The notes: generated from the sequence alone by a model not told the origin. Numbered from the stretch's first letter, positions 3,146 to 63,900 are shown. The stretch is DNA of 64,000 nucleotides from Basidiobolus meristosporus CBS 931.73 (GCA_002104905.1 MCFE01000197.1:70374-134373), one strand, 5' to 3'. Translations and numbers: made by a program.

Positions 3146-5008
3146 CCACAACCTTTTGCTGTTCCTATAGTTGCCCCATAACTCCACTGCAGGCATTGCA
3201 ATAGAACTTATGGTTCTTGATGCTGTGGCTTTATCTATCAGTTAGATCTCAGCTTGGTCAGCAATGGAGGATGTGCAGACTGTGGTAGTTGGGTTGCCTT
3301 TCTTTGCAAGCTCATATACCTCATAGCAGTGTAGCTCAACTGCCTGTGCTTCCAACTCTTGAGAAAGCGGCTTTTATCTTGCTGGCAGATCTTCTTAGCT
3401 ATGATGGGACTCAGCTAGTTCTGGGCTTAGGGCATTAATTTGCAAGAGCAGCCGCTTACTAAGCATGCTAATATGTTCTTGAGATCTGCCATAATCTATA
3501 GCATTGCTCAAACCAACTCAATGCATAAAAGCTGCATATGCATCAAGTTGGCATAGGTAATCCACTTCAGAATAGATATTTGTACAATGTCAGCATATGG
3601 CTCCCAATGCTTCCAATGTACTAAGATGGAAATTGCCTCAGAAGGCCACTTGAATAAATACATATTTAGGACATGCAGTTCTTTCAGTTGTATTGTTACA
3701 TATGCATATAAGTATTGATTGGAGCTTGTGAGAAACACTTTGTATATTGGCTTCTCTGTAATATCTTGCTAATCCTTTAAATTTCTCCAGTATCTCAAAG
3801 TGCTCATTTAGCTTGAAATGTGCCAAACACAGCTTGGTCAGTGACATAGGAATATTGTTGAAGAGCAGATATATTGCAAACAGTGGACAGATTTTGCTCC
3901 AACAGATTGGCACAATATTGACAATCTTCAATTTTTGATTAATTTACATTCTAGCCAATGACTTTCAACTTGACAGCTCTGCTACAATTGACTATTAGCG
4001 TCTATATGTTTTCTTGGTGGGAAGAAGATGTACTTGATGTTGGTGTTTAGACAATAGCAATGTGTGTGAGTTTTGGGGAAAATCCCCTAGATCTCACATA
4101 TTTGCCAGCTATACTGCCAGTTGTGCCTAGAAGAGCCAGCTATATAGCTGATGCTGGGGTACCTCAGATGTGGAGCATAATATGAGCTTTAACATGATGG
4201 TCATATACTAGTGTCCTGCTGGATAGTATGCAAAACTCATCCAGCAATGAATACAGGTTGCTATCAAGGCTCAAGGGAGATTTAGGCCCATATTTCAGGT
4301 AGTCTGCCATCAGATTTCTGCTTTGATACTATAATACTGGTGACAAATTCATGTAAATGCAAATCAGTAGACAGCTAGATTTGCTGGCAGAGTACATGTT
4401 CAGTCAGAATCCATCAAGTGACAAGGAAAAGGTATAGTCATATATGCCATTAAAGTAGCCCTTGCTTCTTAGTTGTTTGTAATTCTTGCCATCATATATG
4501 TTGGAAATGTTTGTGCTTGATTGATACCAAGTGTAGAACTCTATTGCTTCACAATATTTGTGAGAGTGCATGAGCTTCTTGTGATGTGGTAATTCTGGAA
4601 TATATCTGGAGTGTGAACAATACTTTCATCCTATGGTGGTGAGTCCTTGACAAGTTGGATACCTTGCAATAGTAGCATTTACCAATGTGAATGCCATACA
4701 ACTATTAAAGTATGCTGGTATAAGGACAATCTCTGGGTCATATGTCACCAGCTGCATGATGGCTTTCCATTTGTACTAAGTACATGGTAAGTTGAATCCT
4801 GGAATGATTATGACAAGAAGTAGCAGCAGATTCTCAAAGTCTCCATTACCAATATTGGGGAAAGTAAGCCACTTCTCTGGCCACAACTTTGCATCATTCA
4901 ACAGTAAATAAATTACTATGATCACTTGGCTCCATAAGGCATCCATGGCACTTTATTCCAAGGGTGTTGTCTCACTACACATCAAGATTTTGCCAGGCTC
5001 ATTCTGGG
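3146..5008 (-). mobile_element. CMC-1 DNA transposon fragments (ORF2 3' part about 3146-3450, then degenerate transposase)
   Basis: 3150-3450 is the reverse complement of 54620-54900. 3450-5008 aligns with the transposase copies at 20430-22628 and 56470-57590. Confidence 0.8.
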
Positions 5009-6770: not shown

Positions 6771-7292
6771 AGCACCCACAATGCCAAAAACCTCAGCTGG
6801 CATTATAATGGCTTGATGGCAGCTTGGATTTAGTTCTGAGCATTACCACTGAGCTAATATACTAAATGGCATTCCCACTTGATGCCCCCTGGCACCATAC
6901 ATATATTCCACTAAAAAGTCACCCATCTCAATTTGCTTACCCACCACTACCATGCATATGCCTCATATGACTCAAATCAAAAAAATTTGGCTTTTGGCAT
7001 TCTAGCCTTGACATACACATACACCTGCTGCAATTGATGCACTTAAAATACCTCATCTTTACAGATATTCAGTGAGATACTTGCAGAGTTGCCATATATC
7101 TTGTATTGCTGGTAACATATGTATCTTGCAAGCATATGGTTGGTTGCTACCACTTTTACTATAAATACTTCCTGAATGTCAACAAGAACCTTTTGGTACT
7201 TGGCCAACATATTCCTTGTCCCTGATTGTTTCTAACACCCCTTGTGGGTGCGCTCTGGGTCTTGCCTGTGTGCTTTTTGTATTAAAGGTAAT

Positions 7293-8026
7293 AGACTTGT
7301 TCCGTTGGATAGTGCCACATTGAGCCATGAGTGCCAAATGATGCCATAGTGTGCCAGAGAGGTCAAGTGAGCCTATACTTGACCACAGAGTGCAAAACAT
7401 AGCTCCGCATCTTCATGCAAAGCAGCCCCTGTGTTTCACCCATTGCGCAGAAGAAAATCCATTTTTTGACCTTTTTTTGTGGATCAATGTAGCTCAGGAT
7501 TTGCAAGAGCATATGAGAACTGAAGATATGCATCTGGTACCCTATACCCATGGCACTCTGAATCTAGCTCCTGTAGCTTGTATCATGTCACAAAAATGAA
7601 TGGCACTATCTTGGTCCACTGGTACTATCTGGCACTATATTTAAATATTAGCCCTAAAGTAAGATCTATAAAAAGCACTTATAGTGCCAGATAGTACCAG
7701 TGGACCAAGATAGTGCCATTCATTTCTGTGACATGATACAAGCTACAGGAGCTAGATTCAGAGTGCCATGGGTATTGAGTACCAGATGCATATCTTCAAT
7801 CTGCTTGTGCTCTAACACATCCTGCACAACATTGATCCAAAAAAAAAGGTCAAAAAATGGATTTTATCCAACACAATGGGTGAAACACAGGGGCTGCTTT
7901 GCATGAAGATGCGGCGCTATGTTTCACACTCTGTGGCCAGGTAGAGGCTCATTTGGCCTCTCTGGCACACTATGGCATCATTTGGCACTCATGGCTCAAT
8001 GTGGCACTATCCAATGGAACAAGTCT
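7293..8026. mobile_element. Foldback (FB) non-autonomous DNA transposon, 734 bp, 3-bp TSD AAT
   Basis: Inverted arms 7293-7639 and 7680-8026 (347 bp each, about 30 mismatches), 40-bp spacer, termini AGACTTGTTC...GAACAAGTCT, AAT at 7290-7292 and 8027-8029. Confidence 0.92.
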
Positions 8027-8389
8027 AATATTCTTGATGAGACTGAGATATGATAGTACCTGCAACTTGACTTGTCTTCTTAAATCCCCACACATCCACT
8101 CCATAGAAAACTCCCAAAAGGGGAAGCAGGGCCTAATATTCTCTGCACACCAAGCAAGATGGAGTAGTGTATGCATGCAGCAGTGACAGAGATATATGTT
8201 AAGCCTTGTGCCTGTAGTGCATCTGCTCTCATCCCTCCATATACTTGTGCTCAAAAGCTGTACATATGTCATGTTGACATTGGTCCACTTCTATATAACT
8301 ATTCCTGAGATGTCAACATATGACTCCTAATGCTTCTAATGTACTTTTGGTGGAGATTGCTTCAGAAGGCCACCTGCACAAATATGTAT

Positions 8390-8795
8390 CTAGTTTACTG
8401 ATTCTTGCATTTTATTATTTCATATGACAAGATTGTAGATTGGAGCTGGTGGGTATTTTAAGAGTATTGGAGATATTGGAAGTGATTTGGGAGGACATGT
8501 AGATTATGTGGTTTTCACTTAATGATTTACTGAATGTAACAGTAGTAATTACACCTTCACATGGTCTTGGCTTATCAATCATGTAGAATAGGTTAAGGAA
8601 GGTCCCAAGTACATGTGTACAAAGTATGGGGCTGTTTGGACAACTTTGAGAATTTTCATGTTCTGGGTACCTGGTATTTTGATGAATATATTCTAAGTAA
8701 GCCCTAACCAAGGTATTTAGGCAGTATTCTCTAAGATTTGAAGGTATTAATCTAAGTGACTAAGTTAGGTGATATTTAGGTGGAATTACAAATTT
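8390..8795. repeat. Unclassified dispersed repeat N
   Basis: Related segments at about 9517-9850, 61190-61235 and 62540-62760 (shared GATATTGGAAGTGATTGGGAG...ACATGTGTGCAAAGTTTGGGGCTGTTT). No termini identified. Confidence 0.6.
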
Positions 8796-9332
8796 TTACA
8801 ACAGTGAGAAATACTTTGAATAGCAGGTTCTCTGTAGCCTGTTGCCAGTTCTTTCAGATTTTCATGGTGTCTTGAAGGGCTCATCAAGCTTGCAATGCCC
8901 CATTTGCAACTTGGTTAGCAGTATAGAGTTGTTGATGAAGAATAAGCTCACTGCTTGACTGAAAACTTTTGCTATAATACATTCCCTCTATCTGAGGTAT
9001 CTGTGGTTTTCAATTGGTCCCATACTTGGACCTATGGCTGGTAGCATGTAGACTTTACTGCAATTTTATACTTACTTCTACATATTCTCATTATGTAAAG
9101 ACAATGTTTTAGTATTGGTGTCTAGATAGCAACAATGTGTGTGAATTATGGAAGAATTCCTTAGATCTCAGACATTCAGCATCATTACTGTCCATTGTGC
9201 CTAGAAAAGCTGATTATATTGCTGATGGCAAGGGTACTTACCAATACTACTAAAAATATGAACTCTGATAGGATGGCAACTTGTAGTATCCAACTGAAAG
9301 CATAATTGACTTATTCCATCATTCCAGCTGAT

Positions 9333-11450: not shown

Positions 11451-11899
11451 ATCCAAGTGTATGCTCCACTCTCACTCTGAAATGATTAAATATCTTATTG
11501 TAGAGCTTCTGCTTCCTGCTAAATGCATCAATCCTTGGCTTGCTATGGGCTGTAATGCATCCTATTCTCTGACAATCCCCTCCTATTTAAGCTAATTCTG
11601 CCATATATTTCTCCCCTCCACTGAGTTCTGGATGATCCTTATTTCTGCCACTCAGTGACAATTCTAAGATTTGGCACTTAATTTTCCCTTTGAGGTAGTC
11701 AAGCCTTTCAAGAGTTTTGTTATGCTTTTCATATGGATAGAGCACAGTTGAGCTGCCACAATCCAATGAGGCTTTTATAATGCTGGCAGCTTGGTGTTGT
11801 TGACCCTTTTCACTATCTTATGACAGGACTGAGATGGTGCTTTGCCAACTCTACTGCTAAATAGGTAAGTAAACTTGATGGTGTTTAGACAGTTCTTTT

Positions 11900-13132
11900 G
11901 TGAGGTCTAGATGTCATTCTGATGGTCTTATTGCAGCTTCCATTAAGTTGTGCAAGCCAAACTGGCCAACAAATGCAAATGCCATGTATGGAAAATACCT
12001 GACAATGTTCTGACAGCATTGATGGGAACATCTACTGGCATTACATCAGTAGTAGAGTGGCCTACTGCTAGTAAGGTATAATGCTACTCTACCAGTTTAT
12101 CAATTGATATTTCCTGTTACTATCTCCCCTTGTGCTATTTATATATTCCATTGCAGACTCTCCCCATCTTACTTGCCTACCTACTACAACTGTGGGTATT
12201 CCACATGTGGATTTAATCAAAAACAAACTACAGCCTTGAACTATGAACTGCATGCACACACACCTGCTGCACTTGATACACTTATAGCTCCTTGGCTTTA
12301 TGCTTTTCAGTTTGATACCTGTAAAGTTGCCATGTACCTTGTATTACAGGTAACATTTAGATCTTGGAAACATATGCTTGGTTGCCACCACATTTGCCAT
12401 AACTACCTCTTGACTATCTGCAAAATAATTTTGGCATTTGGTAATGCATTCATTCTCCCTGTTGGATTCTAGGCCTCCCTATAGGTGCTCTCTAACTCTA
12501 GTTTTATTCAATTCAATGGTGAGTTATGAGGAAATTAGCAGGTACCCAGGAGAGGCCAAGTGTACTTGGGTAAAGTTATCTAAGTGCAAATCAGCTGCTT
12601 GCAATGTCCAGTGGCACCTTGCAGTACTTAATTGACTACCCATGCATTGAGACTGCTTAACTTCTTACTGCCAAAGGCATAGGTGCCTCCATGTGCACAT
12701 ATGTTGTCAGTATGCATTAACCCTTCCTAGCTGTCCTCCATAAGCCAGCTTATCACATCCTTAATATGTTATTAACGCAGCTGGAGTATGGGATACTAGC
12801 AACCAGACTTGCCTTCCTATCTGCCCATATGTTGGCTCCATTGGGAACCTCAAAAAGATTAAGGAAGTTAAGATGTCCCACACACCAAGCAACATGGAAT
12901 ACAGAATGGATGAAGCAGCAGCAGAGATATACACCTTTGGCCTTATGGAATTTTTGATTAATTTTATATTTCTGCCAATTGCTTATAGCTTCACAACCTT
13001 TCAGCAATTGCATACAACTTCTATATTCTCTCTCTGTGGAAACAAGATGTGCTTACTGTTGATGTTTAGACTGTAACAATGTGTGTGAGTTATGGAGTAA
13101 ATCCCTTGCATCTTACACATTCAATATCAATC
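11900..13132 (-). mobile_element. CMC-1 transposase and tail fragments
   Basis: Aligns with 19100-21400. The HSVFHVAWCVGHLN motif matches HSLLHLAWCVENIGP in other copies. Confidence 0.65.
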
Positions 13133-17325: not shown

Positions 17326-18730
17326 TTTTTCACATCATTGCTCTTTCACAAGCAAATGGACTAATGGGCTCACTTGGCTCCATAAGATATTCATGGCATC
17401 TTTTTCCACTGGTGCTGTATCATTGCATACTGGGATTTTGTCATGTTTATGCATGGTACTACTATGTAGGGAGATAGGCCCATAAGTCATCATTGATTCT
17501 TCTACTTCAGAGCTATCACTCCACAGGCCATGTTGATAAGGCTCTGGTGAGGCAAATTGCATCACAAACCTACCTAAATAAGTTTTTGCAAGGTGAAAGA
17601 TCAAGTTAGGTACCATTTTAGTAGTACCATGTAACTGGCAAGAAATACCTGAAATAGGTGTAACTGATGAATGCTCAAAGAAATTTTGTATAGCACAGCA
17701 CTGACCATGATCCTTTAAATCCACCCTATGCCATCTGTATTGTTTGTGGCTTAGATGCTTATTACAATGACCACATAGTTTTTTCCCATTACATATGGTG
17801 CTGAATCAATGTAGTCTTTCCATAGGGCAAACAGCTTGACACTCAACAGCATTATATTATTATGTAACTATTTTTGTCAATACTTTTGTGAGCTCATCAC
17901 AGATTTGTATTTGAGACACTGCACCTACATGAGTGTAATACTCATTTGTGACCCACCACAGTAAACTTTATAAACAAAGCTGTGGTACCACATGCACAAA
18001 TATTGGTAACATTATCTCCAATTTAGTCCTAATCATTCCCATATCTGTGCTGCCAAAAATAAGGCAAAGTTGTCTTGTTCCCAATCAAACAGCAATGCTG
18101 ACTGCAGCAGAAGATTTGCTCAACAACAGCTTGCTCTGACATTCAGCGCAGCAAGCAGGGCTACATTCAAAAAAAGGAAATGTGAACTCTTCAAGCTCTT
18201 GGTCCAGTTGGCAGTTTAGAGTCTCTGCAGAGCTGCAAGCTTGCCATTATGCACAAGTGGATGATGACTTCACAAATGCAGTACCACTAGTGAAAGACCA
18301 GCAAATGAGCATCATAACATCACCACCTCCTGTATTACCAGTTATATTGTTGCATCTTACCAAAGCATTAGGGAGGCAAGTAGTTGCAGTGACTAATGAG
18401 ATATTTGCAATAGGCCACCAAAATCAGGACATAGTCAACAGACAGGTTGAGTAGAAAATAAATATGGGGCAATCAGTATCCCAGTTAGAGAACGCAGTAT
18501 ATAGGCTGCAAAGCTAGAACTTAGGTAGCTCAATGTCACAGCCAAGATTGGAGCCATTTCATAATGTAATAGTAGAGAAACAGTGTATATTATTTAAGCA
18601 AAACAAAAGTTCCCACAGACTAAGCACAGAGAAGAGTGTAGCAGAGTGTGGGAGGGAAACACTGCAAGCTTAATGTCCAAGCCTAAAAGTCAGAAGATCT
18701 TAGGTATTTGAGAAACTGTTGAGTACAAGG
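17326..18730. mobile_element. CMC-1 central fragment: transposase N-terminus (minus, 17326-17830) and divergent ORF2 start (plus, 18040-18730)
   Basis: Same head-to-head layout and sequence as 52510-53870. Confidence 0.75.
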
Positions 18731-19048
18731 ATAGGAGTGGAATAACATCTCACAGACTGTAAGAAGTCTAGCATGGTTTAACCTTAATCATACCCCAGAC
18801 TTCACAAAAACTGGGTCAAGATCTTTCATCACAACAACAATATTGGCTTCAGATTGTTGTCTGCCAATATTTTCACTTTCTCATCCTGGACACTCAATCA
18901 CAACCTATGTCTGTGTACATTGATTTGCCATTGCCTATTGCTCCCACTCCTTACTTTATGATCCATCCACAGATTTTACCTTTTAGGCCCACAAATCTGT
19001 TTATATCCAATGAAACATCAGTGGTAGCTTGATTACAGATTGTGCTAA

Positions 19049-22000
19049 CCCTATGAAAAATAATTTGGTCCCGCAGGTGGATCCATTTCAGTTCAGCCAT
19101 CAGGATCCCATTTGGAGACTGTCATAATACCAGCAGCTTGGAATTAGTGACCCTCCTGATAATCTTATGACAGGATCATGACGGTGCTTGCTAATTTTAT
19201 AACAAAATGAAGGGATAAAACTTGACAAGATTTTACTGGTGCTGTGACAATAATTGCATGGTATTATTGAGTTCTTTTAGTGCTCTACAACTATTTGAAG
19301 TGGCTCCAATTGGGCAGGACATCCAGTTACCTTATATGGCAAGAAACGTGACAGTATTTCAGCAACCTCACTGTGAGACTCTGATGGCATTATATTGGCA
19401 GTATTACAGTCTACTGCTGGCTTTATATAATGCTACTGCACCAATTTACCAAATGGTATTTCCTTTTTCTACCTCCCCTTATGCAACTCATATATTCCTA
19501 TGTAGTATTACCCTACTTTATTTGTTTACCCACCACTACCTTGGGTATTCCATATATGGTCTGAACCAAAAAGAACTATGGCCTCCTGCCTACTAACCTC
19601 TACAAATGTGCACACCTGCCACAATTGACATACTTCTATCACCACAGCTTTGCAGCTTTTGGTGTGATGCTTGCAAATTGGCCATATACCTTGTACAATA
19701 ATTCCATGGTATTGTTGCGGTCTTATTGCGCTCTACCACTATTGTGAATAGATCCAACTGACCAGAACATCCAATTGCCTTATATGGCCAGAAACTTGAT
19801 GATATTTCAGCAAGCTCATAGTCAGACTTGGATGGCATTATACTGGCAGTATGGTAGCCTACAGCTGGTTCTGTATAGTGCTGTCATACCAATTCATCAA
19901 ATGGTATTTCCTTTTTCTACCTTTTCTTTGGCAATTCATATATTCCACTGTGGAATCACCCCTCTGTATTTGCTTAACCACTGCTACCTTGGGTATGCCA
20001 GATGTAGTTTGAATCAATAAAGACTATGGCCTCCTGCTTACTAACCTCTACAAATGTGCACACTTGCCACAATTGACATACTTCTATCACCACAGCTTTG
20101 CAGCTTTTGGTGTGATGCTTGCAAATTGGCCATATACCTTGCACTGCTTGTAACATATGCATTTTGCAAATAAATGCTTGGTTGTTGCCACTTCTGTCAT
20201 GAATACCTCCTGAATATCTGCCAAGAACTTCTCAGTATTTAGAAGATATATTCCTTCTCCCTGCTGGATCCTAGTCCCACTCATTGGTGTGCTCTGGCTT
20301 TTGAATGTGTGAATTCTGTATTGAATGGTGTAGAAGCTGGCATGTGACCATGAGAAATCTGGCATACCTTGGTAGGGTTTTCCTGATAAAAATCAGTTGA
20401 TTGTTGTACCTAACACAACTTTTCATTACTTAACTGAATACCCATGCATTGGAGCTGCTTAGCTGCTTAATGCTATAGGCATAGGTGTCTCCATGTGCAC
20501 AATAGTCCCCAGTACTTTCCAACTCCTCCTGGCTGTCCTCCATGTGCCAACTTGTCACATCCATGAAAGACCTGAAGGTAATATTCTTGATGGTATTGGA
20601 ATATGGTAGTACTTGCAACTTGACTTGTCTTCCTATCTCCTCATATATCTGCTCCATAGGAAACTCACAAAAGGTGAAGCAAGGCCCAATATTCTCCACA
20701 CACCATGCCAGATGGAGTAGAGAATGGATAAAGTAGTGGCAGAGATCTACATGTTCAGCTTTATGTTTGTAGTACAGCCACTCCAAACCCATCACAAACT
20801 CCTCACACAACAGCTGTAGATGTGTCAAGTTGACTTTGATGATCTGTTTCTGGATAAATATTCCTACAATGTCCACATATGACTCCCAATGCTTCCAATG
20901 TACTTTTGGTAGGAATGGCTTCAGAATGCCACTTGAATAAATATGTATCCAGTTCATCCAGTCTTTACATTTGTATTGTTGAAGATACATATGAGTATTA
21001 ATTAGAGCCTGTGAGAAGTACTTAGGGTAGCAGATACTTAGTAACATCTTCCCAATTTTTCAAATCTCTCTGGTATCTCAAATGGCTCATTTAGCTTAAA
21101 ATGCCCCATGCACAACTTGGTCATCAGTATAGGAATATTGTTGAATAGCAAATGCATTGCTCCCTGTGGAAAGCCTTTGTTCCAACATATACCCTCTATC
21201 TTAAGTATCTGCAGTTTCCAATTGATTTCATATTCTGGCCAATGGCCTATAGCTTGTCAACTTTGCTGCAATTGCATGCTGACTTCTGTACGTTCTCTCT
21301 GTTGAAAGATAATGCTCTCAGTGCTGGTGTTTGGGTAATAATAATGTGTGTGAGTTATGGAGAAAATCCCCTGGATCTCACACATTTGACAGCATTACTA
21401 TCTGCTGAGTCTGCAAAACATGCTATCTTACTAATGGCTGGGGCATCTCCAATGAAGAATATAATATGTGCTTTTACATGACAGCAAATCTCTGTTATCC
21501 TGCTGGAAAGCATACAAATTCATCCAGCAATGGATACAAGTAGCTATCCAGGTTGGACGGTGATTTAGGCCTAGATACCAGTGTGACTACCATCATATTA
21601 TTGCTCTGATACTGTAGGATGGGCAGCAGATTCCAATTGATGAGAATCAGTGGCCAGCAGAATTTGCTGGTAGAGTACTTCTTTAATGAGAATCCATCAT
21701 GTGCTAAAGCAAAGGCATAGTCATGCATACCTTTAGGCTTGCCCTTGCTTCTTAGCTGTTTGCAATGTTTGCCATCAAATATACTGGATATGTTTGCAGT
21801 TGATTGATACTGAGTGTGGTACTGTATAGCTTTGCAATATTTGTTGGACTGCATCAGCTTCCTCAGATGGGGTATGACCAGAGTATATCTGGAGTGTTAA
21901 CAATGTTTTCACTCAATGGTGGTGAATTACCAACAACTTGGACAGTTTGCAATAGTAGCATTTTCAGATGTGAATGCCATGTAACTGTTAACACATGCTG

Positions 22001-23077
22001 GAATCAGTACAGTCTCTGGATCATATGTTGCCTGCCACATGATAGTTGTCCACTTGTACCATGTACATGGTAGGTTGCATCCCAGTATGATTTTGGCAAG
22101 AAGTAGTAATAAGTCCTCAAAGCCCTCATTACTGATATAAGTAGAAACACACCACTTCTCTAGCCACAATACTACATCATTCACCAGTAGATGCACTACT
22201 GGTCTCACTTGGCTCCATAAAGTATCCTTGGCATTTGTTTCAATTGGTAATGTCTCATTGCATATAGGGATTTGACCAGGCTCATATGTGGTATTGTTGT
22301 AAGGGGAGATAGGCTCAAAATCTATCAGTGAGCCCTCTTTATCAGAGCTATCACTCTGCATGCAATATACTGAAGGCTGAGGTGAGCCTAAAGGTGTCAC
22401 AAACTCACCTGACTCAGTTTGTGCAAGGTGACAAAGACAGCTAGGTGCTAATATAGAAGTATCAACTGGGCGGCAAAATAATGTTGCTACAGTAGTGACT
22501 AATGAATGGTTAAATATGACTGGGATGGCAAAACACTGGCAATGATCCTTGTAATACTTCCTATGCTGTCTCCATGCTTCATGGCTGAGAGGCTTGAAAC
22601 AATAGCCACATGGTCTTTTTTTCTTCACTTACAGCATTTAATCAAAATACTCTTGTCCATGGGTCAAACAGTTTGACCTTCAACAATGTGATACCATTAT
22701 ATCATCTTTTGGTCAGTACACATGTGAGCTCAGGACATTCATGTATTTGAGATATAGCACCTACACAAATGTAAGATTCCATGATGACTTGCCATAGTAT
22801 GCATTATCAATAAAGTAGTGGCACCACATACACGTGTATATAAGTGTTTATGAGTGTCTGAGATCAGAAAGTGAGCAGATTAACAGGGAACCAAGCAAAA
22901 ACCACTTTTACACTGATGTGATGAGAAATTTTTAACAGGTTTTTTGTGAAATCTGGGGTGCTATTATTTTTCAACAGTCTCTGGACAGTGTCCTGATGGG
23001 ATCAGTACCTCTTAGTCATGGGATTTTAACTTTATGATGGCCTTTTGACAGGATCATCTTGATAATTTTTCATAGGG
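19049..23077 (-). mobile_element. TIR-bounded CMC-1 (CACTA/CMC superfamily) transposon, ORF2 deleted, 4-bp TSD CTAA
   Basis: Left end CCCTATGAAAAATAATT, right end ATAATTTTTCATAGGG, CTAA at 19045-19048 and 23078-23081. The flanks rejoin into contiguous host ORF2 sequence. Confidence 0.85.
19950..22680 (-). pseudogene. Tnp2/Transposase_21-like DDE transposase pseudogene
   Basis: N-terminal CGYC..H..H, then CVNSYMAF...CPSC, FALAHDGF...WPLILINWNLLP...GPKSPSNLDSYLYPLLDEF, HSLLHLAWCVENIGPCFTFCEFPMEQ (DUF4218-like) and C-terminal FLADIQEVF...HLFAKC. Confidence 0.8.
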
Positions 23078-24874
23078 CTAACCTATGCAAGTCCTTATAC
23101 ACAACACTAGCATTGTGCTCAAACTCACATTCAGCCTGTAACTTCATTCAAATCAACTACTCAATAAGTATTTGTGCCAAAATGCTTTTTTTCCATAAGT
23201 TTAACAGGAACCCCACTACTTTATGCCACTGTTCACTCACCGGCTCCAATATATCCTGGTCTTCAGCCAGCACTGCAAGTGCTAGCACCTCATTATCCAG
23301 TCTTTGTAATAAATTCTGGCAATATTTCAGTACATATTCCTGAGCACTGCTCTTGATTAAGTGCTGTAACCTTTACTGTTCTTGTTATTTCCCCAAAACT
23401 TCACCGCAGGTGCTGAAATAGTCTTTCAAGCTGCTGACATTATTATAACTCTGACTACAATGAAGGATTTAGAGGCAATTGTGGACAAATTGCATTTTTC
23501 TGCAAGCTTATCTACCTCATTGGAGTGTAGCTAACTGGTTGGGCTTGAAACTCCTAAGAAAACAGCTTTTGTCCTGTTGGTACTTGTCATTGGCTGTACT
23601 GCAATTCAGACTGTTCTGAGCTGAAGGCATATATTGGTGAGAACACAGCATTTTCTCACGCTTGCCTGTCTCCAGCTTGAGTAGACCTTTCTCTCTCTCA
23701 ATTATCCTTTATCACTGCCAGGTCTTTCACTGGTACTTGGTCCAAGTGCTTCTTGTAATGATCTACATTTTTGTCTTGATATATGCTGCACTGGGACATC
23801 CACTTTTTCCTTCTTGTTCTTGACTTGTGCTCTTTTTGCTAGCTGACATTTCTTTGCTATTTGTTTGACTGTTGGCCTGAGCTGTGATCAGCTCCTGCAG
23901 AAGTTGCTGGCTTCTATTACTGCCAGGTCCTTCACGGCTACCTTCAATTAGTTCCTCTTGAATGAGACTATGCTTTCTCTTGATAAATGCTCTGCTGATG
24001 CATCCATGTCCACCTGCTTGTCACTTGATGGCACTCTTTTGGCTTTCTGGCATTTCTCTGATGCTTGTTTAGAGCTTTTGGCCCTGCTTGTAGCAGGCTC
24101 TTGAGGAAGACATTGGTTGTTAGCTATAGCACCCTCACTCTTTTGCCTATGACAGTATCTGCTATTTTTGAGATACTTGTCAGCATACCAGTGCTAGCCC
24201 AACCTATTTACTTGCTTGCATCAAGAATAATGTTCATGGAACAGGCAAAGCACATTCTGCTTGGCCTTGAGCTCCTGAATGTCCCATGGTATACTGGCCT
24301 TGAGGTGATGCTGCGCTAGACTACTATCAACCTCTTAAAGATTAGCTTACTCTTCTATGTTGCAATCAACAGTTTCACAGATCTTCAACTTTTTTTAACT
24401 TAGTGATGGGTATAAACACCACAGTCTCTCCGTCCCATGCAATAATAGCACTTTTGGTGGGCTGTATCTTTAGCAATGTTATGCTTCAAAGACTGCACAG
24501 TGCACCTAATTGCCTTATTTGGGCTTTGGTATGAGCTTGCAACGTAGTTGCTAATATTAACAGTGGTGATGTTATGACAGCCACTTGCTGATCATCAACC
24601 AACAGCACAGCATTGGCTACATGCTCATCTGCCTGAGTATTATAGTCAGTTTGTAGCTCTGCAGAGATTCACAATTTATTACCTGACTGTGAGCCCAAGA
24701 GGCCTGCATTATTACCTTTTGTGAGCACACTGCTAATATGGCCTTTTTTGATTGTAGCTCACATGTTGTGCCAGTTGTCAAAGCAAGCTGATGTCCTACT
24801 GTTTTTCTACTGCTCTCAGCAGTGCATTTTAGTTGCAAACCTGATGACTTTCCTTTATTCTTTGGCAGGATATG

Positions 24875-27800: not shown

Positions 27801-29143
27801 TTCATAATGGATGTGGACATCTTGGAATTGAAGGACCCAATAGCCTTATCAAAGCCAGAGCATGGTAGCCCAGGATGAAACAAGATATTGAGATGCTAGT
27901 GAAAACAAGCCAATTCGCCAAATCAACCAAGGCCAACCACAAAGAGTTGCTGAACACCTTCCGTTGAGGCCTGTAAGACCACTTCAGAGATGGGAAATTA
28001 ACTTTATTGGAGGACTGCCAACCACCAGGAAATGCAACCATTAGATCCTTGTAGCAATTGGCCATGCCACTAAATGGCCTGTGGCTAGAGAAGTATCTGT
28101 GGCCAATGAACAAGAAGTTGCAAGTTTCATCTACCATGGGGTCCTAATGAAGTTTGGATGCCCTGTAGAGTATTAATCCCATAGAGGAGGAAGCTTTATT
28201 GCAAAGATATTGGAAGCCTACCTGGAAAAGAAGCTGATCAAATATGCAAACAGGGCTGTCAGTAGATGGGATGAGCATATAGACCAAGCAATTCTTTCCT
28301 GCAGAGTTAGTGTGCACAACACCACCCACAATTGCCATTTCACTTAGTGTATGGATGTGAGCTGGGGATTGCAGGAGATTGCATACAACCAAAGCTTACA
28401 GATTCCTTAGAAGATGAGCACAGTCAACCAAGTAGACATCAGCAGCTGGAACCAAGGTGTCAAGAGGCACAGGTAAAGAATCTCCAGGTGCAGAAAAGAT
28501 GAAGCAGGGATCTGATATGTCTATATCACCAGATGCCTTGACAGTTGGAACTTTTTACTGTTGAAAAACAACACATGGAAGCAGTTTGAGCCACAATGGA
28601 CAGGACCTTTCAAGATCACCAGAGGATGTCCATTTGCAACTTATCAACTAATAGACAAACATTGTAATATCTGGGAAGACTAAGTTCATATAGACAGACT
28701 CAAGCTTGCAAAACTTGCTGACAATACTGAACCATCATGATATTGGTATTACAAGAAAAGAGATTTAGGAGTACACTCTCAACTTTTGAAGGTGAGAATG
28801 TTACAATCTACTGTTTCTAATCAGATCAATTAGTTTTAGGCCTGGCCTATCAGCATATCAGTGTTATCTATTGGATCATTAGTATCATTCAGCAGATGAG
28901 TTAGCAGATTCTTATTATACAGAAATAGATATATGAAGTATCATACAATTGGGTGTTGATGATGCAATCATATGAGTCATCTGCCACAGCCCACATTTGG
29001 AAGTACAATTACTTGGCTATTGATCTGGTAAAATGCATGTAATGAGCAGCTGGAACCTCAATAAAAATCAGTACAAGCTTGAGTGAATACAATACTAGCT
29101 AAACTCCCTATTCCTCTGCAACTCATAAACCCAGACTTGTACA
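24875..29143 (+). mobile_element. Full-length degenerate G1 Ty3/Gypsy element (LTRs 24875-25238 and 28799-29143)
   Basis: Order gag, protease (IMIDSGA at about 25786), RT, RNase H (TDAS, DALSR), integrase, PPT. The LTRs are only about 70-75% identical and no clean TSD was found. Confidence 0.88.
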
Positions 29144-30162
29144 AATAAATGAAAGTGAGTCAAACCGCAAGAAAATAGGCTACATATAAATGTACATGAG
29201 GTGCCACAATTTCATTAAAGGTGCTTACTATGGTGGGGCATTATATATTCTTACATTTATGTCAGAGCAATATCTCAAATACAAGACTGTCTTAGATTCA
29301 CATGAGTATTTGCTGAAAAGTAATGCCACAGTGTTATGTTGTTGAGTATCTAGCTATTTGCCCCAGAGACAAGACTTCTTTAACTCAACACCATAAGAGA
29401 AGGGGAAGACATCCATGTGACTACTACAACAGGCCTCTTGGCCATGAAGCACCTGTTGGCATAAGAAGTATCACCATGATCATGGCCAGTGTTTGACTAT
29501 ATAAGCCATATTTGACCACTCATCAATCACTACTTTACCAATAATATAATACCAGCTGCTGAGTACTGTGATAATGGCACCAAGCTGTACATCTTACCTG
29601 AGTATACTAAGTGAGGTAGGTTTGTAACGCTTTTAGGCTCACCTTAGCCTTTGAGATATTGCCTGCAGAGTAATTGCTCTGGAGAAGAAGGCTCACTGAT
29701 GAATTGCTAGCCTTTCTTCCCTAACAACAGCAACCTGCATGAGCCGGACAAACTCAATATGCAATGGGACAACACCTGTGGAAAAATAGCCAATGCTACT
29801 TCAAAGAGGCAAGTGAGCCCAGTGATTCATCTAGTGGTGAATAATGTGATGTTATGGCTTTAGATGTGAGGTGTTTCCACTAATATTAGTAGAGGGGACT
29901 TTGAGGATTAGTATTACTTCTGGACTAATTCATTCCAGGATGCTACTAATCATGTACATGGTACAAATGGACTATAGTCATGCAGCTGGCTACACACTAC
30001 CCAGTGACAATCCCAATACCACATTGTGCTAGCAGTTGCCTGGCACTCTCATCATATAATGTCAACATTCCAAGGTGTCCAACTTGTCCAGAATCCACCA
30101 CCATAGGAAGAAACCTTTATGGACACTCTGGACAATCTCCAGTGATTCCTCACATAAATAAG

Positions 30163-35339: not shown

Positions 35340-36144
35340 TCATTTGCCCTATGAAGATAATTTGATGCTGCTGGTGGATTCAATCCAGACCAGCCATCAT
35401 GATCCCATCAGGAGACAATTATTTACACCAGCAGCTTGGAATTAACAACCATCTACATGATCTTATCACAGGAATACAGCAGTGTTTGGCTAATTTTCCC
35501 GCCAAATAAAGTTAAAAGATATAAAAGTGCTATTGCAGTGTTTTGCAAAGGGTGGCATGGCATTGTTGCAGCCTTAGTGCACTCAGCTACTATTTGAGTA
35601 GATCTAACCTGCCAGTACATCCAATTGCCTTATTTGGCAAAAAGCTTGACAGTATTTTGATGGTCTCATTGCAAGCCTGTACTGGCATTATCATAGCAGT
35701 ATAGCAGCCTACGGCTAGTTCTGCGTAATGCTACTGTACAAACTTACCAATAGGTATTTCCTTTTTCTACCCCCTTGCGCAATTCATAAAATCCACTATA
35801 ATATTTGCTTACCCACCACTACCTGTGTATTCTACATATAGATCAAATCCAAAAACTCTATGGCCTCCTGCTTACCAATCTCTACAAACATGCACACCTG
35901 CCACAATGCCCTATAAAGATAATTTGGTCCCACAGGTGGATCTAATCCAGATTGGCTGTTAAGATCCTGCCAGGAGACTGCTCTATTGTCAGCAGCTTGG
36001 AATTAATGACCATCTTCATGATCTTGTGATGCAATCACCATGCCATTTTGCTAATTTTATAGCCAAATAAAGTTGATAAAATATAACAGTGTTTGTTCAT
36101 TGTCTTGCCAACAGTGGCATGGCATTGCTACAGTCTTAGTGCGC
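35340..36144 (-). mobile_element. CMC-1 terminal fragments (second TIR starts at 35909); continues at 44126-44428 after the G2 insertion
   Basis: CCCTATAAAGATAATTTGGTCCC at 35909. Sequence is collinear with 19049-19600 and 50671-51200. Confidence 0.75.
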
Positions 36145-36790
36145 TGTGGTGGTGTATAGGTCCAAGGGAGAGATACGTCCAACACTTCTCAAGTGTTCTG
36201 TGTGTGGGATGTTCACTGGGTGCAATAACCTATGGCAAAAGCTTGCTAGGAATACTTGGGTTCTGTTTCTAATCTAATGTGAAGGGGAATAAAGCCACAA
36301 GCTTGTCAAGGGAAAACTATTGAGCTACAATCCCCAACTTAGTTGGAGTCTTAACAAAAGTATGTGCTGGGTTCAGCGTCCTTTGAGATGAGAATGTACT
36401 AAAGCTTCCAAAGTCAAAACAACTGTAAACTCCACTAGCAGGGACTTGATAAGAATGCAGCTGTGGTCAATAGTTACAAAGACAGAAAAGTATCTTTGCC
36501 TGTACAAGAACAAACTTGGGAAAGAATCAAATATAATAAAAGATACCTACTCTGAGTATTCCTCACAAGTAGTGCCTCCAAGGTCAGTTGGCTGTCAGCA
36601 CGGTTTCCTGGGAGTGTCCTGTGGTCTAGGGTTGGAAGTGCAGGTAGCAGCAGGTAGCAGTGATCACACTAATCAACAAGTTGGTATATTGATAAAAGGG
36701 ATGATGATTTATTGTAGAGGGATAGCCTCCCTTATATACTTTTCTCACTGGCTAAGTGATTACTAATCATGGTGTTCCAGAAGGTTCCGG

Positions 36791-37594
36791 TGTGGTAGGG
36801 TAAACATACCTCCCACAGACAAGTTTATTCATATAGTCATTATGATATACTTATCCATATTTTATCTTATCAGTATTATCCCATTCTTCTTTTGCCCATA
36901 TTATCAGTATTATCCCCATATGATGTTTACCCTGATTAGTTATTAGCATTAGTTATCCCATATGTTATTCAGCTTTGTGATCAGTAGATGTATCTATATA
37001 AGGCAAGTACCCGCGTCAGTACCCGTGACACATGACCTAGGTCTGTGTTACCATCTCTACCATTTCAATACCATATATGGTATTTCTATGTTGCACAGGT
37101 TTCAGACTACTGATTCCTGATTGGTTGAGAGTGCTGTGCCTTTTAGAACCTTCCAGGACATTCTTGGCATATTTTTAGCTCATAGTGATGTCATCAAGAA
37201 TTCCACTGATACCTAGAATCTTCTAGAACCTTGTCATTTGTAATCACTTGGCAATCAGGAAAAGTATTTAAGGGAAAGCAATCCCTCATCAATAAATCAT
37301 CCCTTCTATCAGTAACACTTCTACCTTATTGATTAGCAGTTGATCACTGCACCTGCCTTCAACAGTACATCTAAGACCTGCCATCAAGGAGCTTTTCAGG
37401 GTAGTGCACAAGACACACAGAGGCCTTTGGAGACACTTGGAGCACCTAGGGAGCTAAAGAAGCAGGAGCTCTTACCATAGTGACATATTGACAAAGACAC
37501 CAGCAGTTTAGACACAGAGGTTATTGCACCCATCAGACACCTCACACACCTTGAGTTGTGTAGCTTCTCCCAGGAGTACCTCTACACCACCACA
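36791..37594 (+). repeat. Solo LTR of family D (804 bp) inserted antisense into the G2 3' LTR, TSD CCGG
   Basis: TGTGGTAGGG...CACCACCACA ends, CCGG at 36787-36790 and 37595-37598, absent from the sister LTR, and homologous to LTR-C over most of its length. Confidence 0.92.
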
Positions 37595-38023
37595 CCGGAT
37601 ATCAATAGAAATCTTAATGACATCAGAATGACCTAAGAATGCTCTAAGTAGGTGCTGGAAGGTTCTAAGAGGCACAGCACATCCAACCAATTAGGAATCA
37701 GTATTCTGAAACCTGTGTAACATGGGGATACCATATATGGTATGGAAATGGTAGGGATGGTGATATGGGTTGATCATGTGTCACGGGTACTGGCGCGGGT
37801 ACTTGCCTAATATAGAAGCACTTGTAGCTAGAAATCTTACATAAAGTGAGGGGTAACTTATGCAATAAGGTAAGCAGGTGTGATAGTCAACCAGCTTATG
37901 GGATAGTACTGATTGGGTAAGACAAATGGGATAAAACTAAAATGAGTGTAGTAGGGATATAGGGAAGTAGAAAATAAGGGAATGAGCACATCTGTCAGTG
38001 GGTGTCACTGTCACCCCACTACA

Positions 38024-38037
38024 TCCACCCCCCTCTC
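38024..38037 (-). promoter_or_regulatory. G2 polypurine tract
   Basis: GAGAGGGGGGTGGA on the minus strand immediately before the 3' LTR. Confidence 0.85.
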
Positions 38038-38062
38038 AGCTTTGAACTTGGGTCAAAGCAAA

Positions 38063-39277
38063 CTAATCTTGATGTGCAAAATTCTTATGCTTGAATAACT
38101 TAAGTTGATTTCCAGCAACTGGTGCTCTCAACTGGGTGTTGTCAAGCTCAGATATGTAATAACTTCCATTTCCAATCAGTTTGGAAATGAGGCAGGGGCC
38201 AGTCCATTTGTTGTCAAACTTCCGACTCCATTGCTTGTCCAAGGTAGAATCATAGAGTAATACTGGGTCTCCTAGTGCTAGAGGTTTTGGTCTTGTTGGG
38301 TGTGATTTGTCAAAGGGCACCTTGTTCTTTAGTCATGAATCCTTAAGTTGTTCAGCAGCTCTGCTAATATTCAAGTCATGGTGATCAAGTTGCTCTATGC
38401 GAGTTGCAAGGAGGTCTTCAGTCTGCATATTGGATCTCCAATTCAATGAGTTCCAAGTGACTGTGATTAACTCAACTGGTAGTATGCAGTCATGTCCATA
38501 GAGTAGCTTGAATGGCAATAATCCAGTTGTTCTCTTGGTAGTAATTCTATCTGCCCAGAGTACTAGATGTAATTGCTGTGGCCACAGTGTTGTGTTATTC
38601 TCACAAGTCTTGACAAGAGAGTTCACCAATGGTCCATGTCCTCTCTCTATCATTCCATTGGCTTGAGGGTGGTAAGCTGTTGTGAAAGCTATGTGTATCT
38701 TGTACTTTGAGCACAACTCCTGGATCATTTGGGATGTCATCTCTCCTCTGTCAGCAACAAACTGTTGGATGCAGCCAAATCTGCAGATGATGTCTTCAGG
38801 TATAAATCTCCATATGGTATGGCTCTTGTTGTTAGGCAAGGCTCAAGCCTCTGCCCATCCACTAAGGTCATCTCTAGCAACAATCAGGTACTTTTTTGAT
38901 CCAGCTGTTGGCATGTAGACAAGGTCAATACCAACCTTTTGCCACAGACAGATTGTGTAAGTAGGATGCAGTGGTTCTTCATAACGCTTGGAGGATCTCT
39001 TCTGGCAGGCTACACATGACTCAACAAAGTGTTGGATATCATAGTACATGTTTTCCCAGTAGTACCTCTGAGCTGTAGTTTTTTATGTGGCTTCTTGTCC
39101 TCTATGTCCTCCTGGTTCTCCTTGGTGGATACTTGTCATGATGTTCAGTTGCTCTTGAGGGGTAGTGACTACTCTTCTTGGCATAAGTCCAGACTTCACT
39201 TGCTTAAAGAGAAGATCATCTTTAAGATAGTAGTAGTGTGCCTTCTTCCGGAGTTTTCTAAACTCCTGAATATCCAT
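38063..39277 (-). pseudogene. G2 integrase pseudogene
   Basis: HQGEPGGHRG...CVAC (HHCC), GIDL, VADRG, YHPQANGMIER and WTGP. Broken by one frameshift and TGA stops at 38843-38845 and 38333-38335. Confidence 0.92.
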
Positions 39278-39358
39278 CCAACTAGGTTACTTAAGTGTCC
39301 TTAGATATTCCTTAATCAGACTCCAGGTAGTTCTCTCTTGGTCTTTGATGGCAATCTG

Positions 39359-40975
39359 TCAGATCTCTGCATCAATAATATCATCAAAGTGAGGGTCCAA
39401 GTCTTCAAATAATTGTGGTCCCTTCCTGGAGAGTGCATCAGCCACAACATTTGTCTTGCCAGGGATATGTCTGACCTCAAAGTCAAACATTTTCAGCCAT
39501 GCCATCCATTGGTTTGTGGCATCATCAGGTAGGTCAGGCTTGTTGATCATTCCTATCAGTGGCTTGGCATCTGTCTCCAGGATAAAATGTGTCATGTAGA
39601 GTTGTGACTTCAGTTTCCTCAGCATCTTCACAACTCCAAGTAGTTCTCTCTTAATCTGAGAGTATCTTTGCTCTCTAGGAGAGAATAGGCAGCTCTCATA
39701 TCTGCAGGCATAGCGGTTGCCATCTTCATCATCTTGTCCAAGAAGTGCTCCAGCTCCTATAGGGCTTGCATCCACTGTCAAAATAGGCGGGCATTCAGTG
39801 CTTTGATAGTCATGAGGTCTTAGAACTGGTGGAGATACTAAGGCCTCTTTCAGTAATTGCATGGCTTCTTCTTGCTCTTCTCCCCAGATAAATGGGGTAT
39901 TCTTTCTCTGTAGTTGGTAGATTAGTTCTGCTATCTCCAAAAATCTTGGGATCCAGATCCTAAAGAACCCACAAGCAGCCACAAAGCCACCAGCTTGTGT
40001 AAGATTTGTGGGGGTAGGCCAGTTGAGTATCTTTTGTGTCTTGGAGTCTCCAGGTGAACAACCAAAGGTGTTGCATTTTTGTCCCACAATGGATATCTCT
40101 GATACACCAAAGCTGCTTTTCTCACCACTGATGGTGAGTCCTGCTTCTTCAATGGCTCCTAATATGGCATCATTGTCTACAATATGGTTATAGACAAACT
40201 TTCTTACTCCAGGCATAACTTCAGTGGTGTCCCAGGAATTTGGTTCTTTGATGCCTATGTCATCCACAAAGATAGCAAGTTTCTCAGGTATAAACAGATA
40301 CAGCACATTTACCATGCATCTTGGGAACTGAGCCACAAAGTTTGTAGCCCCTTGGCTGAGTCTTGTCATCCTTAACAGTCCAAATGGTGTCTGTAGTGCA
40401 AACATATCTCTTGATGTCTTATCAAGGGGGATCTGGTCATATCCTGAGTAGAGATCATATGTTAAGTAGATGGAGTGGCCACTAAAGCTTTCTGCAAAGT
40501 CATCAATAGATGGAGGTATAGCAGCATCTCTGATAGTGACAGCATTTGCAGGTTGCATATCTTGAATGAATTGGAGCTTTCCATTCTTCTTTTTGGTCAC
40601 AAACCATCTGTTAGCATAGGGTCCATGGCAAGGTTCTAGGATACCAGCTTCTATCTTCTTCTTAAGTAGGTCATGCACATCAGCTTGGAGTCCTCTGGGC
40701 AGTGGGTAAGGCTTAAATGACCAGGGTGTGTGGGGCACTGTATGAATCTTGATGGATTTTTCAACCGATGTCTTTAAGAGTCCCATCTCCTTGTCATTAT
40801 ATGAGAAGACCTTATCATGCCTTTTCAAGGTCTCCTTGAATAATAGTATCTCCTCTGGTGTTAGGTTTCCATCACCAATGATAAGTTGCTTAAGTCTCTC
40901 AGGTGTAAGTTGTATATCTTCTGGTGTTTCTTCTGGTGGTCTAATGTAATCAGCAGGCTGAGATCCATCAGTCAA
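39359..40975 (-). pseudogene. G2 reverse transcriptase-RNase H (uninterrupted 538 codons within a disrupted pol)
   Basis: RLSQGATN, FVDD, TVDAS, ETDAKP and ADALSR motifs. Confidence 0.95.
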
Positions 40976-41052
40976 TGGGGTAAGTGATGGTCTAATCTTC
41001 TGTTCTACTGTCTTGTATTTTGTTTGATCCGTAGCTGTTTGCTCCTGTATAC

Positions 41053-41979
41053 CTAATGAGCAGCTCCAAATGTTGGGTGTATATTGTCAGGCTCTTCATC
41101 TTCTTCCATAACAAGATGTGCCTTCTGGCAAGCAGTATGCGTCCTCTTATTGTTGGGTGTTACACCACAGAAGGTTGACTGTAGTCCTGGATTGGATCCT
41201 TGTATGGTGTACCATACTAACCCATTGGAATAGTTGGTAATTGTAGCCTTAGTACTGGCTTCCCATGGTCTACCTAGCAGAAGGTCAAAGTTTGCCTTAT
41301 GGCAGATGAAGAGGGGAAGCCAGACCTTGATTCCTTGTACCTCAATAGTGAACTTATGTACTACACCATAGAGTGGACTAGATCCTGAGTTTGCATTGGT
41401 CATATTCCATCCAATATCTCTATCAACAGGCAGTAGCTCCTTGCTTTTAAGTGTCTTCCAGAAGTCTAGCGGCATAACACAAATCTCTGAGCCACTGTCA
41501 ATATGGCAGTCAACAGGGTCATCATATGTATACCCTTTCACCACAGCAGTTGCAACTGAGTAAAAGGTCTGATATTCAGTAGTGTTATCATCCTTTTGGT
41601 GGTCTTCATGGTTTGTCTGAATTATATGGGTGTCCATATGTTCAACAGCTTGTTGTCTTGTTCTAAGCTGCTCATCAAAGGTCTTCCTAACAGATGGGGA
41701 TACACTCATGATTTCTCCAACCAACAAAGTGAAGTTCTGCTCCAGCAGCTTCTCAGTAATCGGTTGAGGGCTTGAGTAGCTTGCTATCTTTGAGGTCATC
41801 TGAAAGTGAGGCAATGGATCTTGGGTGGGCAGCATACTCGGCCTCTTGTCAATAACAACTTCAGGTTCTTCAAATCGTGGTCTTCTAAGGATGGGCTTGG
41901 CAGGTTCTTCAGGGAGGTGTCTTTTGGTAGCAAAGGCATCAACTTCATATTGTCTGTTGTCAGGGCTGCTTGGATTCAC
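41053..41979 (-). pseudogene. G2 aspartic protease region
   Basis: HIDSGSEICVM and FDLLLGRPW. It is frameshifted from the downstream KYKTV..KIRP segment. Confidence 0.88.
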
Positions 41980-42914
41980 TTTATGAGTCTCAATAGGGAC
42001 ATCAACAGTAAACTTTCTGGTTGCTGAGTCAGATTTCTGGAAAGGGCTCTCATCCCTCCTCTTTGGAAATTAGTGGGAATCCTTCTTCCTTCCTTGTCAG
42101 CAAGCATTCCATCAGCATAAAACTGTACTGCTCCTTCTCTGAGTAGCTGACTAAGCTCTGAGCATTCTTGTCTGGCATGCTGAGTAGAGTAACACCAGAA
42201 GCAGTGCCTGGGCAAAGGTCTTTGTCCCTCAGTAGCAACCTCAGCTGAGCCATTAATCTTGAGGGCTAGTTTTTGTAGCTGTTCAGCAAGTTGGTCAATT
42301 CTGTTGGTAGTGTAGGTCTGATTGTCCGCAGCAGCACTCCTTGGCTCCTTGGTTGACTGGTCTGGCAGATTAGATGTCAGGAGTCTCATAAAGGTAGAAG
42401 TTTGTTTTGCCTCTGGGAGAACATGTTTCATCTCTGCAAAGCAAGGAATGCCAGACTTGTCATCCTTGGCTGCATGTAAGTCAACTTTCCTTGCCAAGTC
42501 CTGGGGAAGCCCTTGTGCAAGGTAAAGTGTTATGGTAAACTCAGTCATAGCCTGGGACTCTAGGAGTGGCTTGGCCATATCTTCATACTGTTGAATGAAC
42601 TCTTCAAGTGGTAGCTTGGAAAGTCCAGTTCTTCCAAAGTGCCTGAGGTCTTCAATTCCATAGTATATCTGGGGTCTACCATACTTGGTCTGTAGGTAGG
42701 TCTTCATTAAGGCCCAGTCAGTGAGAATATCTCCTTGTCTGAGAAGCTTAGTGGTAATATCATTGGTGCAGTAGTAGGGGAAGTCTTCAGCCATTTCTTG
42801 TTCAGATAGGCTGCACATCTTGCAGAGCTTCTCCCATTTGAATATGAAGCTTTCCACATTCTTTCCATCAAACTGTGGGGCTCCATGTGAGAGTCATAAT
42901 GGCATAGAGTTCAT
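41976..42914 (-). pseudogene. G2 gag pseudogene
   Basis: ATG at 42914, in-frame TGA at 42894-42896, PQFDGKNV motif, and CCHC knuckle CFWCYSTQHARQEC. Confidence 0.88.
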
Positions 42915-43032
42915 TTTGGGCAGGTAGGTTGGTGTTGTAATCTTGGTAATATTGGTAGTCTCTTTTCAATAGGTGGATAACAGCTCAAATCTTCAGGTAG
43001 ATCTTGTTGGGTCCTAGGGAGCTTGTATGAAC

Positions 43033-43050
43033 CCCCCATGTTGGGTGCCA
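43033..43050 (-). promoter_or_regulatory. G2 primer-binding site, tRNA-Lys(CUU) type
   Basis: TGGCACCCAACATGGGGG lies 4 nt from the LTR. The known Lys1,2 PBS is TGGCGCCCAACGTGGGGC, and two of the three differences are CG to CA. Confidence 0.8.
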
Positions 43051-49775: not shown

Positions 49776-49923
49776 TTTGACTAAGTTTTTTGTGAAATCT
49801 GGGGTGCAATTATTTACCAACAGTCTCTTGACAGTGTCTTGACAAGATCAGTACCTCTTAGTCACGGGACTTTCTCTTTGTGATGGCCCTTTGACAGGAT
49901 CATCTCAATAATTTTTCATAGGG
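49776..49923 (+). mobile_element. CMC-1 right end (TIR ends at 49923)
   Basis: Matches 55445-55592 and 22935-23077. Confidence 0.85.
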
Positions 49924-63771: not shown

Positions 63772-63792
63772 TCGAAATAGACGTGTAACGGT

Positions 63793-63900
63793 GAAGGGAA
63801 GGGAAGGGAAGGGAAGGAATGGAGTAGGGTGATGCGTGATGGGAACGAGAAAACTGTAGATCAAGTGGTGACAGCTGGCGGGTGCCCCCGGTATTTAAGC
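63793..63900 (-). promoter_or_regulatory. Putative SDR promoter/5' UTR: (CCTTC)5 pyrimidine tract and TATA-like CTTAAATA
   Basis: (GAAGG)5 at 63793-63817 on the plus strand and TATTTAAG at about 63892-63899. CT-rich tracts near transcription starts are common in fungi. Confidence 0.4.

Follow-up and report, generated by a model that had tools for sequence, protein, structure and literature searches.

The 64,000-nucleotide stretch of the Basidiobolus meristosporus CBS 931.73 genome analysed here (GCA_002104905.1, MCFE01000197.1:70374-134373, read as one strand and referred to below as the window) contains at 19049-23077 a transposon of 4029 bp, element A, in which 17-bp terminal inverted repeats (TIRs), bordered by 4-bp target-site duplications (TSDs), enclose a transposase pseudogene with an aspartate-aspartate-glutamate (DDE) type catalytic domain. 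Element A is a dead non-autonomous copy nested inside an older copy of its own family, and this family very probably belongs to the cut-and-paste transposons of the CMC (CACTA/EnSpm-Mirage-Chapaev) group, here in a zygomycete-grade fungus. The following features make up element A and its borders:

19045-19048, unstranded: left TSD, CTAA; the matching empty site in copy B (55215-55218) has one 4-bp unit only
19049-19065, plus strand: left TIR (CCCTATGAAAAATAATT), from the motif scan and end profiles
19247-20144, plus strand: tandem duplication private to element A, two units of ~448 bp with 83% identity, within the left subterminal sequence; not in copy B
20087-22660, minus strand: transposase pseudogene, ~850 codons, Tnp2/Transposase_21 DDE type, from Pfam and the profile of relatives
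22661-22841, unstranded: remnant of the inter-gene spacer, 181 of 222 bp
22842-22851, unstranded: deletion junction, from comparison with copy B
23061-23077, minus strand: right TIR (CCCTATGAAAAATTATC on the minus strand), from the motif scan and end profiles
23078-23081, unstranded: right TSD, CTAA, matching the left one

The first-pass annotation of this DNA had described 19045-23081 as a two-gene element, a description which has to be withdrawn. The equivalent of positions 53144-55367 of another copy in the window, copy B, is missing from element A, which has thereby lost 41 bp from the end of the spacer, the whole of the second open reading frame (ORF2) and ~100 bp further, and resumes past the junction at the final 226 bp of the element; it is thus a one-gene, internally deleted pseudogene copy, holding the transposase pseudogene only. 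The latter runs on the minus strand from an ATG at 22660 to a stop at 20087, and survives as six or more stop-free pieces. The window was mapped onto element A and onto copy B, which gave the following further members of the family:

50671-55592, plus strand: copy B, with both TIRs, carrying the spacer and ORF2
52963-53184, unstranded: spacer of copy B, 222 bp, candidate bidirectional control region between the transposase ATG at 52962 (minus strand) and the ORF2 ATG at 53185
53185-55262, plus strand: ORF2 pseudogene of copy B, ~690 codons, interrupted by one frameshift and some nine stops
49927-58854, minus strand: copy C, with its left TIR at 58854 and interrupted by copy B
59180-62546, minus strand: copy D, truncated, with transposase, spacer and 5' part of ORF2
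18792-24873, minus strand: older copy H, interrupted in the 3' part of its ORF2 by element A (18792-19043 and 23081-24873)
17331-18787, plus strand: fragment of copy I, with transposase N-terminus, spacer and 5' part of ORF2
35347-35907, plus strand: solo left end F, flank TTTG, from end profiles
35909-36137, plus strand: left end E, flank AATG, broken by a Gypsy element from 36141, from end profiles
49776-49923, plus strand: solo right end, flank AATT, inserted in ORF2 of copy C
3149-5002, 6856-9192, 11734-13121 and 29142-30132: further family pieces

Taken together, copies A and B give the full family layout of ~5.8 kb, which starts with the 17-bp CCCTA TIR and ~590 bp of left subterminal sequence, continues with the ~850-codon Tnp2-type DDE transposase gene on the reverse strand, the 222-bp spacer and the ~690-codon ORF2 on the forward strand, and finishes with ~330 bp of right subterminal sequence and the right TIR. 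Copy B keeps the N- and C-termini of the transposase, while its DDE core has given way to part of a foldback miniature inverted-repeat transposable element (MITE; 51645-52083). The best-preserved piece of the DDE core, 245 amino acids long, is found in copy C at 56730-57464, with the 5' end of the ORF2 of that copy at 49927-50331.

The class assignment is carried by the transposase, of which the stop-free pieces were searched separately and never joined. Pieces of A, C and D each matched Pfam Transposase_21 (Tnp2) above the curated cut-off (E 3.5e-10, 5.1e-12 and 3.2e-10, respectively), while DUF1258, which bears on the comparison with Mirage, gave a weak match below threshold (24 bits vs a cut-off of 33). 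When 1.84 billion representatives were scanned by HMMER with the 245-amino-acid core of copy C, 1050 relatives were obtained at E ≤1e-3, the best of them just 47% identical to that core. Each of ten relatives of 551-1029 amino acids contains Transposase_21 (E 1e-20 to 1e-28), and five of the ten also DUF4218. Searched against the stop-free segments of the window one at a time, a profile of 40 full-length relatives (1001 positions) reached E 3e-56, with the pieces of element A colinear with profile positions 213-786. A 205-amino-acid downstream piece aligns to positions 621-786 and has no Pfam DUF4218 match of its own, so that of the two families proposed earlier for a Pfam check (PF02992, DUF4218), Transposase_21 was found and DUF4218 was not matched by the piece from the window.

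The catalytic motifs are LALDGF (first D), EDTPA (second D), CQTC (C(2)C), HSLLH (H(3)H) and PMEQ (E), together with a conserved H in AMHL. In pieces from copies C and A, the CQTC, HSLLH and PMEQ motifs align with CrfC, HaLLH and mER conserved in the relatives, and the CxxSC...CPxC cluster located upstream in the relatives was found in the N-terminal piece of copy B as well. With Transposase_21 in three copies and this D, D, C(2)C, H(3)H, E signature, the Tnp2/Transposase_21-like gene of CMC type which had been claimed for this DNA is supported. The core piece was modelled with AlphaFold, which gave a mean predicted local distance difference test score (pLDDT) of 56, with residues 10-130 at ~70-83, and a beta-beta-beta-alpha-beta-alpha core; the top Foldseek matches of this moderate-quality model in the PDB were nearly all RAG1 and the Helicoverpa Transib transposase (HzTransib), at weak E-values of 6e-3 to 4e-2, and a sequence-profile search of the PDB sequences gave no match. 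The named relatives all come from zygomycete-grade fungi, i.e. Calcarisporiella thermophila, Basidiobolus ranarum, Rhizophagus irregularis and Circinella minor. In a FastTree phylogeny of 139 core sequences, the protein from the window forms a clade with the ENA proteins P0001 and P0003 (support 1.0), and the next group (support 0.83) includes Circinella minor proteins. Metagenome contigs were also searched with the relatives, which gave none for P0003 and two short contigs without complete elements for P0014. Word-filtered protein searches were blank for the 220-amino-acid DDE piece and gave the query alone for P0003, the closest relative, but owing to the length window and word filter these blanks carry no information.

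The ends of the family were searched for by scanning the window with the 17-bp TIR motif CCCTATGAAAAATWATT, allowing up to two mismatches and using dinucleotide-preserving shuffles as control. There were six matches (19049+, 23077-, 49923-, 50671+, 55592- and 58854-), vs an average of 0.03 in the shuffles. The first-pass annotation had listed seven TIR positions, of which the seventh, 35909+, is a variant shorter by 1 bp, CCCTATAAAGATAATT; its count was incomplete, as there is an additional eighth end at 35347+, which is of the same variant type as that at 35909+. Profile searches with the ends sorted them into five left and three right ends, which can be aligned over 120 bp within each type, whereas left and right ends have only the first 16-17 bases in common, and the family thus has a short TIR with differing subterminal regions. 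The termini are CC...GG in seven of the eight ends and CT in the remaining one. The two left ends at 35347 and 35909 are in the same orientation and 562 bp apart. We considered whether 35909 and 49923 (flanks AATG and AATT) could be the two ends of one insertion, but the sequences outside them are contiguous in no copy, which is not what a simple nested insertion would give, and this pairing was rejected as unproven.

Two insertions retain both ends, and in each case the target site can be compared with its uninterrupted state. Element A lies in the older, reverse-oriented copy H, and when its flanks are joined after removal of one CTAA they align without gaps to copy B, where the single unit is at 55215-55218 (TTGA in B). 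Copy B is flanked by GATC (50667-50670) and TATC (55593-55596), and a single GATC is present at its insertion site in five uninterrupted sister sequences: element A, copy B itself, 29433-29521, 60327-60398 and 17690-17758. Each of the two complete insertions therefore duplicated 4 bp, and one of these duplications later acquired a single-base change; flanks matching at four of four and at least three of four positions are expected by chance at ~2.5e-4, given the base composition. Duplications of 4 bp with flanks rejoining across them had been described before from these two end pairs, and now have one empty site for A and five for B, with older family copies as the flanking DNA. The sample of target sites is small (two end pairs and four solo ends), but the A/T bases previously noted in the centre of the flanks are present at both central positions in six out of six independent flanks (CTAA, GATC, AATG, AATT, TTTG and CTAT; P ~0.001).

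ORF2 is found at the same place and in the same orientation in copies B, C, D, H and I, which differ by up to 30%, and begins with MPPKNKAK in B and MPSKNKAK in C. The distance from start codon to start codon is 222, 221, 222, 223 and 220 bp in five copies which differ by up to 36%, and the spacer is at least as conserved as the adjoining coding DNA. The head-to-head arrangement of two genes about 220 bp apart is a feature of copies B (222 bp), C, D and I, and not of 19045-23081, for which it had been claimed. This fixed length and conservation of the spacer fit a shared control region, as far as can be judged from the sequence. ORF2 would encode a probable helical stretch and low-complexity sequence rich in Ser, Lys and Gln, and in copy B a 207-bp tandem duplication (54137-54554, 72% identical) encodes the Ser/Lys/Gln-rich segment. 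No TET/JBP domain was detected in the ORF2 pieces scanned. Protein-guided ratios of nonsynonymous to synonymous substitution rates (dN/dS) between copies were at first below 1 for both genes, but were similar in two wrong frames, leaving a weak frame-specific signal for the transposase only; from this wrong-frame control, the values below 1 are largely an artefact of transition bias.

In published descriptions of the CMC/CMCT clade, the ends are CA...TG 'in most cases', the TSDs measure 2-5 bp and C(2)C and H(3-4)H motifs are present, with a D, D, C(2)C, H, E signature given for EnSpm, Mirage, Chapaev, Transib and their allies (PMC12730594). The elements in the window have the Tnp2-type DDE transposase, the catalytic motifs and a TSD within that range (4 bp in two out of two). 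Since the TSDs of the clade span 2-5 bp and CA...TG is found only 'in most cases', the combination of features is unusual and yet inside the known range, and the family is a modest variation on the known CMC type. The similarities to EnSpm/CACTA elements are Transposase_21, the DUF4218 of the relatives, short TIRs, a second non-transposase protein of ~600-700 amino acids, and a terminal pentamer, CCCTA, which equals CACTA at four of five positions, with a C at position 2 as the difference. EnSpm/CACTA elements in the strict sense, however, have CACTA ends with a 3-bp TSD, as opposed to CCCTA with 4 bp (n=2) here, and their second gene is co-oriented in one transcription unit, while ORF2 is a separate reading frame facing away from the transposase and has no similarity to the plant TnpA-type families. 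Mirage elements have a TSD of 2 bp, which also differs from the 4 bp found here. Among the fungi, the Plavaka, ESTA and TET-carrying EnSpm elements of Basidiomycota (Kojima 2025, PMC12730594) share the catalytic signature and often carry an extra gene. Their ends and TSDs are nevertheless different from CCCTA with 4 bp, as Plavaka has TSDs of 2-3 bp and TGT or CATCA ends, ESTA has a TA TSD, and the rust EnSpm elements have CAC ends with a 3-bp TSD (PMC12730594). For Basidiobolus, a study based on Pfam counts and without element anatomy reported a 'huge expansion of CMC-EnSpm' (PMC5751038), and our literature search found no description of CMC elements with CCCTA ends.

The CCCTA ends and the 4-bp TSD claimed for this CMC-type family are supported, the ends at eight positions and the TSD in two insertions compared with empty sites. 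The family may represent an undescribed CMC sublineage of zygomycete fungi, with CCCTA...TAGGG ends, a 4-bp NWWN TSD (W being A or T) and a divergent ~690-codon gene across a 222-bp bidirectional region, a suggestion which we put forward tentatively and with rather more doubt than confidence. In such elements, the DDE transposase would cut at the CCC/GGG termini and move the element by cut-and-paste, with integration through 4-bp staggered cuts and a preference for NWWN targets. Internally deleted derivatives did transpose, and defective copies, such as A without ORF2 and B without the DDE core, may have been mobilised in trans by intact copies elsewhere. By analogy with En/Spm, ORF2 could be an accessory protein comparable to TnpA, and the spacer might drive both genes as a bidirectional promoter.

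Several findings weigh against this interpretation. All copies are decayed and none in the window is complete or intact, the CA...TG termini typical of CMC elements are replaced by CC...GG, and the 4-bp rule is derived from two complete end pairs. As to the second gene, searches of ORF2 against Pfam gave chance-level matches only and no family, those against the ESM Atlas gave sub-threshold leads only and no convincing look-alike, and between the copies in the window its true-frame dN/dS does not fall below the values of the wrong frames. As the signal is not frame-specific, protein coding of ORF2 is not demonstrated by these copies, and the case for a working gene rests on its fixed position. 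ORF2 could therefore be non-coding or a captured fragment of host DNA, which would make the two-gene design only apparent, and its low-complexity composition, its 207-bp internal repeat and the transposition of element A without it are in line with such an origin. Against this, its position, orientation and start (MPPKNKAK or MPSKNKAK) are constant in at least five copies, as is its distance of 220-223 bp from the start of the transposase, and we consider a functional element gene the likelier origin and a passenger sequence unlikely.

The other alternatives concern the class of the family and the length of its TSD. If the boundaries had been placed one base off on one side, the TSD could be one of 3 bp, as in standard CACTA elements, and with copy B taken by itself, GATC/TATC is accounted for by duplication of ATC (3 bp) and one additional base as well as by a 4-bp TSD with one mutation. 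This is very unlikely for the family, as the duplication of element A is identical at four of four bases, its joined flanks align without gaps to copy B only when exactly four bases are counted once, and the base just outside the CCC terminus varies among the eight ends, which leaves no hidden extra terminal base. The ends of piggyBac elements begin with CCC, and their TSD is TTAA. The CCC...GGG termini and the 4-bp length of the TSD, one of which is CTAA, are thus reminiscent of piggyBac, and one could think of a piggyBac-like element which merely contains a Tnp2-like gene, but nothing further is in common. The transposase families are unrelated, none of the 16 distinct ORF pieces of the elements matched a piggyBac-type family in Pfam (with Transposase_21 the sole supported match), TTAA is absent from the flanks CTAA, GATC, AATG, AATT, TTTG and CTAT, and the Tnp2-type gene keeps its position between the TIRs throughout the copies, so that this alternative can for practical purposes be dismissed. 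A more serious candidate is the Chapaev branch of the CMC group, for which a 4-bp TSD could be seen as the hallmark: its TSDs are 3-4 bp and Chapaev3 prefers TWA between A and T (PMC4079192), which resembles the 4-bp TSD and A/T-rich target centre found here. However, Chapaev termini have been described as CAC...GTG without exception (PMC4079192), vs CCC...GGG in the window, the Transposase_21 and DUF4218 of the relatives make up a Tnp2/EnSpm architecture, and the named relatives of the transposase are all fungal, whereas the described Chapaev families are mainly animal. We therefore regard membership of Chapaev as improbable, and retain the Tnp2-type CMC family as the preferred assignment.

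If these features hold genome-wide and are absent from Repbase, the family would extend the CMC group by a terminal and target signature of its own, from poorly sampled fungi, and would imply that terminus and TSD length are more flexible in Tnp2-type transposons than the rule of CACTA and 3 bp allows. This would be relevant to automated transposable element classifiers keyed on TSD length and terminal motifs, and the divergent two-gene layout with its fixed-length spacer offers a compact candidate for a transposon bidirectional promoter. The general principles of transposition are unchanged by it.

The decay of the family is visible throughout the window. Pairwise identity between copies is 68-90%, and insertions are nested in older family copies, i.e. 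A in H, B in C, and the right end at 49923 in the ORF2 of C. Copies I (forward) and H (reverse) meet head-on at 18787/18792 at non-homologous positions, and this junction may have arisen by inversion or deletion between copies. The observed/expected ratio of CpG is 0.03-0.16 over the first 60 kb, where that of GpC is ~1.0-1.35, and reaches up to 0.47 in 60001-64000, where the GC content is 53% and an intact dehydrogenase gene is located. The family copies are old and have lost their CpGs, and on base composition the pattern fits methylation-driven decay of repeats.

Other repeats are interspersed with the family. A foldback MITE at 7289-8031 has arms of ~350 bp which are 91% complementary, and fragments of it are present at 51645-52083, 56320-56472, 57593-57960 and 58855-59191. 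Such fragments lie inside the transposase region of both B and C with differing junctions, reflecting either shared ancestry or repeated targeting, and the MITE arm at 58855-59191 directly adjoins the left end of copy C. The copy starting at 35909 is interrupted by a Gypsy-type long terminal repeat (LTR) element (36141-44129) with LTR pairs ~97-98% identical, and a related solo LTR-like stretch is found inverted at 46237-46616. An unrelated repeat family (2110-2942 and 47965-48796) is 91-97% identical and has an internal tandem unit of 72-73 bp. No tRNA genes or Rfam families were found in the 64 kb. The only evidently functional gene of the window, which also places the host among zygomycete-grade fungi, is the intact short-chain dehydrogenase gene (sorbose-reductase-like) at 62884-63771 on the minus strand, the protein of which is 75% identical to one of Mycoemilia scoparia, its best named relative, and 71% identical to a fragment from Basidiobolus ranarum.

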